Positions 20,601-56,700 of a stretch of DNA of 64,000 nucleotides are shown piece after piece. A program made the translations under genes and the position numbers. Position 1 is the first letter of the stretch. Each line of letters begins with the position of its first letter. Source of the DNA: Octopus sinensis (lineage: Eukaryota); the NCBI RefSeq assembly GCF_006345805.1, contig NC_042998.1:70556001-70620000 (forward strand), read 5' to 3'. Under the pieces are notes generated by a model, which worked only from the letters and a program-made list of their open reading frames with translations, made no database searches and had not been told where the DNA came from.

Positions 20601-23600
20601 TTTGTAACCAAGCGAAAGCGTTTACGAAAGTATTTTCATTGGTCAGATCAATCATCAAGAAAAATCCTTTTGCGTCTCTGAAGTAGGACGTTGTCAAGGA
20701 ATGGAACCTGATTGAAAAAGAAGGCCATACAATTAGGTGGGGAATAGCTTTATATATTAATATACGTACATATTCATATAATTACAAGGTACTAAGTCAT
20801 ATGCGCTAACGAGTGACGGTTAAGCACTCTAAGCTGAGCATATATTGACTGATAGATGTAATTTAATCAATATTAAACATGCTGTACACACACACACACA
20901 CACACACACACACACACGCACACACACACACACACACACACACACACACACACGCACGCACGCACCTACGTATGTATGTATGTATGTATGTATGTATGTA
21001 TGTATGTATCAATATCTCTCCTTCCCTCCAGCTCTCTCTCTCTCTCTCTCTCTCGCAATATATATATATATATATATATATATATATATATATCTATATA
21101 TATATATATATATTATATATATATATATATATACAACTCACATATATTGACTAAGACATGCAGTGTGTATAAATATAAACACAACTTGTGCATATATCGA
21201 TTGAAAGAGATAAACAAAAGTTCAATTGAAAATGTGATGATTTTCCTCATCACACTTCTTTTGATGTCCCCGTCTTTGATTTCTCTCTCGTTAGAACTTT
21301 CCCGAATTCTGTTATCCTGGATTTTGAAGGTATTCATTATGGCTTTTGGGCCCTTCTGCAATATTCTGCGTCACTAATAATGATTAAATTCGCTAAGCTA
21401 ATGTGTAGCTTTCGACAGAGATCACTGCAAAGGTACAGAGCATGTGTTAATGTAGTCGTTAGCTCAAACGCATACTTGTCACTTTACATCATTAATATTG
21501 TTAGATTATAATATCAAATAATTAATTTTCATTATCATTACAGTTATATCTATAACTGGCTGTAAGTATAATTTGTTAATATTTTTTTTAGTAAAATAAG
21601 AACGATCTGTAGCCTCTATTAATGATCGTGGACAATACCTGGCCATAAAAAGAGTCTCTATGTGGCCGGTAGTCATCCTAGAAATTGCACCCAATTCTAC
21701 ATCAAATCATATATCACATATTTCAAAAAGGAAGGACATATTTGACAATGAACTCTTGAAGATATTATGCTTGAAAATAAAAGAACCGGGTGGCCACGGT
21801 TGAGATACAGCTAGTCGTAGAATTTGTTCGATCAAAGCTGAAATGGATCTTAGCATCAACAATAACAGCTATGTCAGTAAAAACGACAACTGTAACATCG
21901 ACAACAGCAGCAGCAACAACAATAATAACAACAAAGACAAACACCATTAACGTCAACAAGAACGGCTACGATAACAACACCAGTAGGAACATTAACAAGC
22001 ACAACAACAACAACAAAGAAGCAATGACAACAGAAACAACAATACCAATAAGAAGGGCAACAACAAAAATACGAAAATAATAATAACAACGCCTATAACA
22101 ACAATAAAAACACCAATGACAATAACAAGAACAACGACAACACCATAACCAAGTATCCAAGTGGAGAAGGTTACTCAACTGAGAGAGCCATTGGTTATGT
22201 TGCTGATCAGAGAAGAAAGTCTGTATTTCGGCCATTACCTTACCTACCTTTCCATACCAGCTGTATCCCACAGCTGGACACAGACTTTGTGGTAGGCAAC
22301 CGCCACTGAACCTTGAGCGTTTGAGTAAGAATATTTGTAGGACTGCAAAACAGAGAACAGATTTCTTTTGATCACATCAGAATACATGTGGTTGCTGTCG
22401 ATAATGATGACGAAGACGAAGACGACAACGATGATGGCAATGAGGATGATGTTTTTCTAAATCTTTAGTCAGAAGACAAGGCAGGGCTCCAGGGCCTACG
22501 AGATGAGACGCTTGGAAGGAGGATGATACTCTCAAACCAGAGACCTGGCCCTGGTTTGAGGGTATCTTTCAGTCTTCTATGATGCTTGCGTTATAGCAAC
22601 CCAAGGTATTAGGGGCTGGATCACGGATAAAATCTACAAATCAAGTACAAATCAAATTCCAGAGCGGAATTTGAACTGAGAATACCAGGAGCCTGAACAA
22701 ATACCTCAAGATAACCGGTTCGACGTTCGTACAGTTCTGATAATTCACCGCCCTAAATCGGTAGCTTCAATTTTTTTTTTATCGACACTAAAAGGGTGAA
22801 AGGTAAAGTTTGACCCCGGTGGGTTTTGGATACAGAGCGCTGAGTATCAGAAAATGTACCGCGAGATATTCTATCCGACGTTCCAGCGACCCTTCCAATT
22901 CGCCTGATGATGATGATAATGAGGAGGAAGAGGAAGGAGAGGATGGTGGTATTGGTGCTGATGGTGATGGTGATGATGATATGTGGATAGACGGGTGTCT
23001 ATAAATAGGTTTGAACAATACACGTCGTGTTTAAATGTCATTCACACTAGATTACTGCTCACCACATCAAGGAACGAGTAGTTGTTACACAGACGATCAC
23101 TTTGCATTTGCATTAAAACTCTTCCTTCTCCACTCCTCTCGAATACACAACAATCAGAGGCACTTTCCATAACCGTGCTGTGTCGAGCTTTTGACTCTTC
23201 TACCGCTACTATAACTGTATCTGCTTATGTGAACCAACAAGCTGTGTACCGCTATCATTGAAGCTCATCCTTTCCTGAAGCGTCCAGTGGAAGGTAACAT
23301 TTATGGTGCATTTTCATTACCCTTTGAATGTTAACGACTTGGTAAGGCAACACTATTTTGTTTTGTAATCATACCAAAATGCCATTTACAAAATACAAGT
23401 TTATAAATCTATACAGTGTCTTACTGCGTGTGAACAGTGCTATAATTTCATTTTTAAGATTATATATTATCTTCTGTTTCTATAGAATTCAGAGCTATCA
23501 CTGTAAGTTACGACCTTTCATAAACAAATACGTCTCTTTATAAACAATGCGATAGAAAAGAGACATAGGAAAGGTATGAGCACAAGCTTATCCTACGGGT

Positions 23601-53700: not shown

Positions 53701-56700
53701 AGAGAAAAAGCGAGAAAAGGCAAGAAAGAAGTAGATATAAAAGGTAGAAGGTTGAAAAACCGGAAAACGAAAAAGATATAAGAACTGAGCAAAAAAATTT
53801 AGAACTAAGAGATCTAGTAAAATAACAATGTACTTAACAGTTGAGAAAAATGACCAACAATTGTACACAAATAAATATAGTAAAGTGAGTTATTAATAGT
53901 CAGGTCTCAGTACTCCCCAGTCTGTAAGAACTAACCAATTACTAACTTCTAGCAGATACAGTGGAATAGTAGTTACTAGATTATAGATATGCATCATAGT
54001 CTATGAGAACTGGCAACACAACTGACTACTAATGGACGCGGTGAAGCATCATCGACATGAAGTGGAAGATTGTTATAAAGCAATGTTAAAACATTTGTCA
54101 ATTACTATTTTGGCTACTACAATACATACATACATACATACATACATACATACATACATACATACATACATACATACATACATACACACACACATACATA
54201 CATACATACATACATACATACACACGTACGTACGTATGTAAATACATACATACATACATACATACATACACACGTACGTACGTATGTAAATACATACATA
54301 CATACATACATACATACATACATACATACATACATACATACATATACATATATATATGTAAGACGGTTCTCAATTTCTAAATGTGAATTTGGTTTTTGTT
54401 AGAAAGCAGCTCCTTCCTCACAGGAAGACTTCAAATAATTAATAATTAAAGGCAACACACATATTTACTTACATACACAAACAAGCGCATATATGTGCAT
54501 ATAAACATATACGTTTCATTAAATACGTGACTATATTTTATCATTTTTATTCAAGTATTTTTCGTATTGTCTTAGCAGCTATTTACAGTTGGTTCGGAAC
54601 AATAGAATTCCTAAATCCACATTAGACGTTTCCAGATATTCACAACGTCATTTCCAAGAATAGATTTATTTCGTGTCTGTATTGAATGTTGTATTAGTCT
54701 ATTATGTAAGCTCATTGTGCACTTGCAATATAGAGCAATTGCACAGCATTAGACCACACACTACAAAACAATATTTCGGGAGAATATTCATATATCTTAT
54801 AAAATCTCACATAGGAATAGCATAGAAATTACGGAAACCATATTCATGTCAAAATTAATACGCAAACACATACAACTAGAAAATTGATACGTGGCTACCG
54901 ACATGAAATGATAAAATTATAATGGTTAAAATTTAACCACAGCAAATAAATCAACATGTGACTAATGGTTCATGATGCTAAGGGTTAAAAAACTTTTGAC
55001 TGAAAATGCACGTAATCAACCAATACAAATGAAAAATATACCCAGTTGTTAAAAATGAGGTAGAGAAGGTCTGGAAATATCGGATGTGGATTTAGGAACT
55101 CTTCTGTTCCTAACCGACTGAATAATGCTAATAAGAACATAGAAAAGAAATCTAATATAAGAAAGATAAGGGTTGAACATAGTGTCGTACTTAAGGAAAC
55201 ATGCATGAATGAAAAACTGTTTCCCATATATACGAATATATATATAATATATATAATATAATATAATATAATATATATAATATAATATATTATATAATAT
55301 ATAATATATATATATATATATATATATATATATATAATATATATATATATATATATATATATATATATATATTATATATATAATAAAATTAATTAAGGGT
55401 AGAAATTGATATTTATCAATTAAAACCAGTGGTCTAGCATATTAAAAAAGAATCCGAAGATTAAAATATTTATATATACCAATTAAGGACTGAACACGAA
55501 AAGTGGACAGTCAACATGCTAGATATAGACGTCAAATCGCCATTCTCCACAAAAAGATTATGTTCTCAAATCAAACTCAGCACAAAACCAAAGTAATAAA
55601 CAAGTGAAAATATACGAAATAAAATAATTACCCATGTACTGATCAGTTTCGGCTATTATTATCCGCAAGGATAACTGTAGCATTCATCAGTATGGTCCGT
55701 TATAAATGCAATTTGCTGGACTAGATGCAAAAACGATACCGGAGTATCGCGTGCATGGAGTTCAACCTATTACATTCGAATGTATCTTTCAAATGCCTTT
55801 ACTTTGGCGCGTTGAGACCCGAAAAAACCAGCCTGCAGCTAATAATTAGCAGCAGTCAATTTATCGGTTAGAGAACATATTTATATGTATGTATATGGTG
55901 TACTGTTCCGTGACGGTGAGGTCAACAAAAAACGTACTCCATTTGGTGAGAGATAAATATTATTTAATAAGCACAATATATGTTTTTATGTGCTACTACT
56001 AGTTTCATGCGATGAAAGCATGCCGGACAGTATTATTTTATTTCGTATATTTTCACTTGTTTATTGCTTTGGTTTTGTGCTGAGTTTGATTTGAGAACAT
56101 AATCTTTTTATGGAGAATGGCGATTTGACGTCTATATCTAGCATGTTGACTGTCCACTTTTCGTGTTCAGTCCTTAATTGGTATATATATATATATATAT
56201 ATATATATATATATATATACACATAATATGATATAATATATTTGTCATGAACACACATATATGGATATATAGATATACATACACACACCCACACTCACAT
56301 ATACATAAATGAATACTTGTTTATAATTATATACAAACAGGGGCACCTTTCCATTCCAGCCGTATCCCAGATTTGTACAGATGCTTGACGATAGTAAACC
56401 TTTGACTGCCCGTTCGGTAATGTTTGGACGATTCTATAGTTCTGCAACGTGGAAAAGAAAAGCACCAAAAAAAAAGAAAAACAAAATAAAACAGTTACTA
56501 ACGATCTTTACCTCCTCTTTCATTTCAACACCTCGTCCTCTTACTTACACTCCTCTTCCACCATTTTTTCTCCTCTCCACCAATCGCCGTCGTCGTCGCC
56601 GTCGTCGTCATCGTCATCGTCATCGTCATCGTCATCATCATCATCATCATCATCATCATCATCATCATCATCATCATAGCAACAACAGTTTTATTTTCAC

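Follow-up and report, generated by a model that had tools for sequence, protein, structure and literature searches.

Two tandem Rab GTPase genes of Octopus sinensis carry methionine in place of the switch-II glutamine. Both lie on the minus strand of one 64,000-nucleotide stretch of the genome (RefSeq assembly GCF_006345805.1, contig NC_042998.1, positions 70,556,001 to 70,620,000; hereafter, the window). Gene A has five exons and encodes 258 amino acids, with the switch-II methionine at Met120, as assembled from splice sites. Gene B also has five exons, and the methionine is Met106 in its 248-amino-acid model. Both genes already exist as automatic database annotations: the gene A protein is 100% identical to "ras-related protein Rab-27A-like [Octopus sinensis]" from NCBI (P0001), and the gene B protein is identical to "Rab-27B-like [Octopus sinensis]" (P0291, XP_029651694.2). 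In the literature on Rab27 in octopus and on lineage-specific cephalopod Rabs, we found no description of these genes or of their methionine. We think it reasonably likely that A and B are a functional, Rab27-derived pair from a diverged octopod clade, with an ancestral Gln-to-Met change, slow intrinsic GTP hydrolysis, and new effectors.

The initial annotation of this DNA had reported the motif WDTAGME in both genes, and its coordinates for the ATG codons (22255-22253 in gene A and 56354-56352 in gene B) and its residue numbers are exact. The minus-strand sequence is TGG GAT ACA GCT GGT ATG GAA AG/GTAGGT in gene A and TGG GAT ACG GCT GGA ATG GAA AG/GTGCCC in gene B (the slash marks the end of the exon). 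The paralogs use different synonymous codons around the methionine (ACA/ACG, GGT/GGA, GTC/GTA, and CAG/CAA), and a change from Gln (CAA or CAG) to ATG requires two substitutions. WDTAGME is also present in gene A from Argonauta hians (P0003; 76% identity) and in gene B from O. bimaculoides (P0005; 94% identity). A partial gene A from O. bimaculoides (P0004; 92% identity) belongs to the same clade, and its sequence begins downstream of the motif. In O. vulgaris, a "Rab-27B-like" protein of 360 amino acids (P0002) has exons 1-4 of gene B fused to exons 2-4 of gene A and hence contains two G domains and two copies of WDTAGME. The two parts of P0002 are joined through odd linker and terminal exons, and the protein reflects either a faulty prediction or read-through transcription from B to A. 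Overall, the change is found in both paralogs, in four octopod species, and in two genera, and all four coding sequences have ATG with synonymous differences nearby. This supports the view, put forward in the initial annotation, that the change is ancestral and was retained. Judging from these codons, the methionine is common to both paralogs by shared ancestry and not by coincidence. We refer to the proteins that share it as the Met clade.

Canonical Rab27, a regulator of secretion, exists alongside these genes. Using Rab27 from the squid Doryteuthis pealeii (P0158) as the query, we retrieved 118 canonical Rab27 proteins, and all 118 contain WDTAGQE. These include proteins from O. vulgaris (P0295) and Argonauta (P0311), as well as from gastropods, bivalves, a chiton, annelids, a brachiopod, nemerteans, deuterostomes, and cnidarians. 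Thus, a WDTAGQE-containing Rab27, which the initial annotation had proposed to look for, coexists in octopus, Argonauta, and squid. In octopods, it is on another chromosome or scaffold than A and B. The initial annotation had also considered that methionine might be a feature of molluscs in general. It is not, because the canonical Rab27 proteins that we examined, those from molluscs included, all read WDTAGQE. Across the Rabs that we fetched, there were 226 instances of WDTAGQE and 8 of WDTAGME.

To place the clade more broadly, we searched 1.84 billion representative proteins exhaustively with a profile of the four full-length proteins; within the top 150 hits, the clade was represented by octopods alone. 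Similarly, just 6 of the 409 proteins that we fetched have a clearly higher score with A or B than with canonical Rab27, and all 6 are octopod members of the clade.

Relationship of the pair to Rab27

A and B are probably Rab27 proteins by descent, not by function. As the initial annotation had it, they are Rab27-like paralogs: Rab27 is the closest family in sequence and in predicted fold. Both proteins in the window match the Ras family of Pfam (PF00071; 146 and 126 bits). In a sequence search of the PDB, they matched Rab27A/B with 166-174 bits, and the next Rabs (Rab26, Rab8, Rab3, and Rab1) with at most 121 bits. The AlphaFold model of A has a mean predicted local distance difference test score of 82, with most of the G domain above 90. 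It superposes best on Rab27A/B, and its top 21 matches in Foldseek are all Rab27A/B, but the alignment behind the model contained many Rab27 sequences, which biases the match. A and B also share with canonical Rab27 (Rab27A/B; squid BAG81978; P0295 and P0311) the long insertion between strands beta2 and beta3, the switch-II signature RF(R/H)SLT.(S/A)(Y/F)FR(D/Q)A.GF, and a C-terminal cysteine motif.

Gene structure points the same way. The positions and phases (1, 0, 2, and 2) of four introns are identical in A, in B, and in the canonical Rab27 of Argonauta (L003), and exon 4 is 228 nucleotides in all three. In the Argonauta gene, whose exons we located with tblastn and exhaustive matching of donor and acceptor sites, the introns fall at L/G just before the GD of the P-loop (phase 1), at RV/VH (phase 0), at E/R after WDTAGQE (phase 2), and at Y/N before LTYFETSA (phase 2). 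This match is discriminating because the introns of mollusc Rab8 sit elsewhere: in Rab8 from Bulinus (L005), the one other Rab subfamily compared, all of the intron positions that could be mapped are different.

We also inferred a neighbor-joining tree from 172 columns of the G domain, using Kimura distances and 300 bootstraps; this applies a distance method to a long branch. The Met clade, the A orthologs, and the B orthologs each have 100% support. Because A orthologs and B orthologs group separately, the duplication that gave rise to A and B is older than the split between Octopus and Argonauta. The Met clade joined with Rab27 has 81% support, and the Met clade joined with cephalopod Rab27 has 0% support.

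Both genes seem to be maintained by selection. We used the method of Nei and Gojobori to estimate the ratio of nonsynonymous to synonymous substitution rates (dN/dS). For gene A, comparing O. sinensis to Argonauta, dN/dS is 0.20 across the whole protein (dS = 0.94, close to saturation) and 0.10 in the G domain (dS = 0.84). For gene B, comparing O. sinensis to O. bimaculoides (dS = 0.08), dN/dS is 0.37 across the whole protein and 0.24 in the G domain. Between A and B, dS is saturated, so dN/dS is not computable. The initial annotation had raised the possibility of ratios near 1, and all of these estimates are well below that. By these ratios, both genes are under purifying selection and are not decaying. 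Also, across the split between Octopus and Argonauta, the G domain of gene A is 83.9% identical, as compared to 80.7% for canonical Rab27, so A is now at least as constrained as canonical Rab27.

In contrast, A and B are just 52% identical to each other, and A is 42% identical to canonical Rab27 from octopus, versus 72% identity between the canonical proteins of octopus and cnidarians. Such low identities imply that the genes either changed rapidly in a burst once duplicated or are of considerable age. Within the G domain, A and B are about 38-44% identical to canonical Rab27, which is about 70% identical across Metazoa.

Nucleotide binding, effector surface, and proposed mechanism

The core residues for binding GTP are intact. 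In human Rab27A numbering, all four proteins of the Met clade keep K22, T23 (which is Ser in A from O. sinensis), T41, D74, G77, N133, K134, D136, S163, and A164. In terms of motifs, the Lys and Ser/Thr of the P-loop, the Thr of switch I, DTAG, NKxD, and SA(K/V) are all present. With their C-terminal cysteines and all of these contacts to nucleotide and Mg conserved, A and B should bind GTP and should be lipidated. The C-terminal cysteine motifs are KCSCI in A (17472-17489), CNCCTN in B (50505-50525), and KCTPCS in A from Argonauta, instead of the CGC or CAC of canonical Rab27. These atypical motifs may alter the mode of lipidation or carboxymethylation.

The P-loop itself has diverged. Both paralogs and their orthologs have GDASVGK(S/T) (26777-26797 and 60547-60567), where 109 of 118 canonical Rab27 proteins have GDSGVGKT. 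That is, the canonical Ser is replaced by Ala and the adjoining Gly by Ser, so that Ala and Ser occupy the sites of G12 and G13 of Ras. Ordinary Rabs such as Rab43 and Rab6 have Ala or Ser at these positions. We considered whether GDASVGK might be a second catalytic anomaly and rejected this idea: given the similar P-loops of ordinary Rabs, it is not diagnostic.

The methionine is not an isolated edit either, as it is one of many changes at positions that are nearly invariant in Rab27. From 60 canonical sequences, we identified 106 columns that are at least 93% conserved. The four Met-clade proteins all keep the canonical residue at 51 of these columns, and at 34 columns, that of the switch-II methionine among them, all four differ from it. 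Besides the P-loop, the remodeled regions include the N-terminal DYDYL motif, which is lost; switch II and helix alpha2 (A87S, F88Y, and M93K/N/R); alpha3 and the loop that follows it (R153F, Q158K, Y164P, and P168Y, in the numbering of gene A); and several positions in alpha5.

Among the altered positions is the pocket by which Rab27 recognizes its effectors, which are of the Slp/Slac2/Munc13-4 type. In this WF/SF4 pocket, Y122 is flanked by C123 and C188, together with M93 and M185; no human Rab other than Rab27A/B has these two cysteines, and effectors bind far less well when Y122 is mutated (PMC8864489). In the four Met-clade proteins, Y122 is replaced by Pro, C123 by Arg, Gln, or Val, C188 by Ser or Val, M93 by Lys, Asn, or Arg, and M185 by His or Arg. 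All five residues are preserved in canonical Rab27 from octopus, Argonauta, and squid. The replacement of the pocket removes the main support for transferring the cell biology of Rab27, such as melanosome-like organelles, ink, or pigment, to A and B. The initial annotation had suggested a role in pigment, ink, or melanosome-like granules, and this idea is weakened because it presumes that A and B use the effectors of Rab27.

We propose the following scenario. A gene of the Rab27 type would have been duplicated at the DNA level and would have given rise to a distinct and strongly diverged clade. The common ancestor of A and B would have replaced the switch-II glutamine by methionine, which would have been kept since. 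A and B would then act as membrane-anchored Rab switches, with partners other than the Slp/Slac2-type effectors of canonical Rab27. We view this as probable neofunctionalization, and not as a "locked-on Rab27."

In Ras and in Rabs, the glutamine of switch II positions the attacking water, and replacing it lowers intrinsic hydrolysis. Without such a side chain to position the water, A and B should have lower intrinsic GTPase activity than canonical Rab27, so the intrinsically slow hydrolysis suggested in the initial annotation is a reasonable expectation. If the proteins are switched off, this might occur via a TBC-type GTPase-activating protein (GAP) that provides both Arg and Gln in trans, or via control of expression or turnover, as with other GTPases that lack the glutamine. 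The initial annotation was correct that TBC-domain GAPs supply their own Gln: in the dual-finger mechanism, Arg and Gln are provided in trans, and the Gln of the Rab (the cis-Gln) is pushed aside and is dispensable for GAP catalysis (PMC5902221). Also, Rabs with a Gln-to-Leu mutation can remain sensitive to TBC GAPs, with the GAP supplying the Gln (PMC5902221). For Rab27a, the GAPs are TBC1D10A/B and the guanine nucleotide exchange factor is MADD (PMC5902221). Because TBC GAPs are the main inactivators of Rabs in cells and bring their own Gln, the "default-on" state suggested in the initial annotation cannot be read from sequence.

A bolder version, which we regard as a long shot, is that octopods or coleoids evolved a private, constitutively GTP-loaded pair that is controlled by expression in place of a GTPase cycle, has given up the Slp/Slac2 pocket for new partners, and drives cephalopod-specific regulated secretion or positioning of granules, for instance in cells of the chromatophores, ink, suckers, or salivary glands. 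We considered whether the lack of transcript-derived (Logan) copies of these genes might be a sign of low expression, and rejected this, as the cluster of canonical octopus Rab27 likewise lists no Logan source.

Comparison to other Rabs and alternative explanations

Some natural Rabs lack the switch-II glutamine: Rab25 has WDTAGLE, Rab24 has WDTAGSE, and Rab20 has WDTAGRE. As in A and B, the glutamine is naturally replaced in an otherwise intact Rab, and low intrinsic GTPase activity is expected. In contrast to A and B, these belong to other subfamilies, have other residues at this position, and are ancient in vertebrates or metazoans; the octopus pair is so far known from octopods only, at the level of sequence. 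Engineered, GTP-locked Rabs with Gln-to-Leu mutations (Rab27A Q78L; constructs of the PDB 7OPP/3BC1 type) also have a hydrophobic side chain that does not form hydrogen bonds at the same position. Of the two codons that lie a single substitution from both CAG and ATG, one is CTG, which encodes Leu. As judged by its motifs, the octopus pair is a new, so far octopod-only addition to the Gln-less Rabs, an already known class, with an unusual residue, a restricted distribution, and a remodeled effector surface.

Three metagenomic proteins (P0014, P0016, and P0018) contain both GDASVGK and WDTAGME, as in the octopus clade. We rejected a close relationship, as they group with the octopus clade in 0% of neighbor-joining replicates and their best matches in the PDB are to Rab14, Rab4, and Rab2. 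On this evidence, their WDTAGME is an independent change from Gln to Met. GDASVGK co-occurs with the methionine in two unrelated lineages. The metagenomic genes are on gene-dense and apparently intron-less contigs (L004, 3910-4644), next to kinase, ankyrin-repeat, and ClpP/NfeD-type genes; these contigs would be compatible with a giant virus or an intracellular microbe as their source.

Several of our results weigh against a Rab27-derived and functionally distinct octopod pair, besides the bias in the structural comparison. In the tree, canonical metazoan Rab27 is monophyletic to the exclusion of the Met clade, with 99.7% support; this basal placement could be due to long-branch attraction or could reflect an older origin. 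Of 16 columns with a cephalopod-specific state, the Met clade matches cephalopods at 3 and the outgroup at 3, which points neither way. Since the four Met-clade proteins share the same residue at 86 of 180 G-domain columns anyway, the invariance of the methionine is no more than modest evidence for selection on the methionine itself. The limitation of the clade, so far, to Octopus and Argonauta reflects the databases, which apparently contain no annotated proteomes from decapodiforms or Nautilus. In Argonauta, no homolog of gene B turned up in the 10 kb that flank gene A on each side; gene B might be lost, moved, or farther away in this genus. And the expectation of slow hydrolysis derives from the biochemistry of Ras and Rab mutants, not from methionine itself. 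The basal placement would suit an alternative history in which the Met clade is an old and separate paralog, sister to Rab27, that was lost from almost all other animals. So would the gulf between A and canonical octopus Rab27, which exceeds that between octopus and cnidarian Rab27, and the Arg at position 226 of A, which is the non-cephalopod state (canonical Rab27 of cephalopods has Ser). At the present rate of change in A, as calculated from the identities, the split of A and B would be several times older than that of Octopus and Argonauta. We nevertheless consider an old paralog to be improbable. Many independent losses would be required. Only octopods contribute clade members to the best 150 profile hits, and canonical Rab27 was present in each of the annotated gastropod, bivalve, chiton, annelid, brachiopod, and nemertean proteomes. 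Distance trees routinely draw long branches to the base, and the intron structure is the same as in canonical Rab27.

A different concern is that the methionine might be nearly neutral: A and B would be ordinary cycling Rabs with a normal GTP/GDP cycle in vivo, and the methionine would be one of many substitutions fixed in a burst that followed the duplication. We take this seriously, even though we think it unlikely. The intrinsic hydrolysis of Rabs is already slow, and TBC GAPs displace the cis-Gln (PMC5902221). Also, the methionine is accompanied by the other changes at near-invariant Rab27 positions, and the conservation of this site is unremarkable for the G domain. On the other hand, the glutamine is retained in every canonical Rab27 that we retrieved and in most of the other Rabs that we fetched, so its loss is not routine. 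Substitutions at this position are generally known to lower intrinsic hydrolysis. The Q78L mutant of Rab27A is used as a GTP-locked tool (PMC8864489). Finally, A and B could be relaxed or decaying duplicates, or artifacts of annotation or assembly, with no function of their own. The fused P0002 from O. vulgaris is obviously wrong, and the gene A entry from O. bimaculoides is partial. But independent assemblies from four species all have unbroken reading frames and sound splice sites, gene A is conserved like canonical Rab27 over the same split, and the low dN/dS and the retention of all the GTP-binding motifs and the prenylation cysteines also make decay or artifact very hard to credit.

If a functional, Rab27-derived pair is what these genes are, then they would be a natural experiment in which a Rab has kept a hydrophobic side chain at its catalytic position, under purifying selection, since before the split of Octopus and Argonauta, beside an intact canonical Rab27. 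They would offer a natural case for asking whether, thanks to TBC GAPs, a Rab can do without its cis-Gln in vivo, and they would be a candidate gene pair for membrane traffic that is specific to octopods. The names "Rab-27A-like" and "Rab-27B-like" are misleading: the functions of Rab27 should not be transferred to A and B, because the catalytic glutamine and the Rab27 effector pocket are both absent. The wider significance is limited, as Gln-less Rabs and lineage-specific duplicates of Rabs are both well known, and the finding is incremental unless expression or biochemistry links the pair to a cephalopod-specific process.

Gene models and other features of the window

We located the exons of A and B with tblastn, for which a Rab27A sequence served only as the probe. 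The exon borders are from inspection of splice sites and from a scan for first exons that start with ATG and end in phase 1. Every intron in both genes is of the GT-AG type, and exons 2-4 are equal in size between the paralogs.

Features of genes A and B, in coordinates of the window
Feature	Coordinates	Strand	Content
Gene A exon 1	34029..34191	-	From the scan of open reading frames with a donor site: 54 codons plus G/GTAAGT
Gene A exon 2 (107 nt)	26696..26802	-	P-loop (G)DASVGKS; switch I (FIPTIGIDF); acceptor CCGCCAG/, donor /GTCAGT
Gene A exon 3 (95 nt)	22248..22342	-	beta2-beta3 hairpin with Rab27-type insertion; terminates in WDTAGME(R)
Gene A ATG	22253..22255	-	Met120; position of Ras Q61 and human Rab27A Q78, by residue mapping
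Gene A exon 4 (228 nt)	20480..20707	-	Switch II/alpha2 (RFHSLTTSYFRDAKGF); alpha3 region with remodeled RabSF3; G4 motif GNKID
Gene A exon 5	17472..17655	-	G5 motif ETSAK; alpha5; hypervariable tail; C-terminal KCSCI; stop TAG
Gene B exon 1	61539..61659	-	Candidate starts: ATG 61659 (248-amino-acid annotated model, MRTFKADN) and in-frame ATG 61626 (MSKYFLKW)
Gene B exon 2 (107 nt)	60466..60572	-	P-loop (G)DASVGKT; switch I (FAPTIGIDF)
Gene B exon 3 (95 nt)	56347..56441	-	beta2-beta3 hairpin; WDTAGME(R)
Gene B ATG	56352..56354	-	Met106 of the 248-amino-acid model; Met95 from the conserved start
Gene B exon 4 (228 nt)	51941..52168	-	Switch II/alpha2; alpha3; G4 motif ANKCD
Gene B exon 5	50505..50700	-	G5 motif ETSAV; alpha5; tail; C-terminal CNCCTN; stop TGA

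The first exon of gene A begins with the ATG at 34191-34189, encodes an N-terminal extension of 46 amino acids together with strand beta1 (YKFLLV), and ends in phase 1, within the Gly codon of the P-loop. Gene A spans 16.7 kb in O. sinensis and 5.2 kb in Argonauta (L001, 1-25198), with the same exon structure.

For gene B, the conserved start is probably Met12 of the 248-amino-acid model, which would give a product of 237 amino acids with the switch-II methionine at Met95. We shifted the numbering because gene B from O. bimaculoides has an in-frame stop codon (MRT*KADN) upstream of the second Met (L002, 9968-10090) and starts at that second Met.

We found no third Rab27-like paralog and no pseudo-exons within the 64-kb window. 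Nor did we detect other protein-coding genes there: running Pfam on open reading frames of at least 105 amino acids gave only a likely retroelement remnant (zf-RVT). This open reading frame (471 amino acids; 62069-63484, minus strand) is upstream of gene B, and its weak match to zf-RVT (PF13966) is below the gathering score; it is likely a retroelement remnant. Another open reading frame, of 224 amino acids (27294-27968, plus strand), is within intron 1 of gene A and has no match in Pfam; it is likely a retroelement remnant as well. Simple repeats are found near several exons, at around 26100-26550, 52170-52260, 56250-56330, and 61300-61460. They include tracts similar to (TATG/CATA)n, which translate as "YIHTYIHT" or "MYVCMYVC," and there are GT-rich tracts directly upstream of exon 4 of gene B and downstream of its exon 3.

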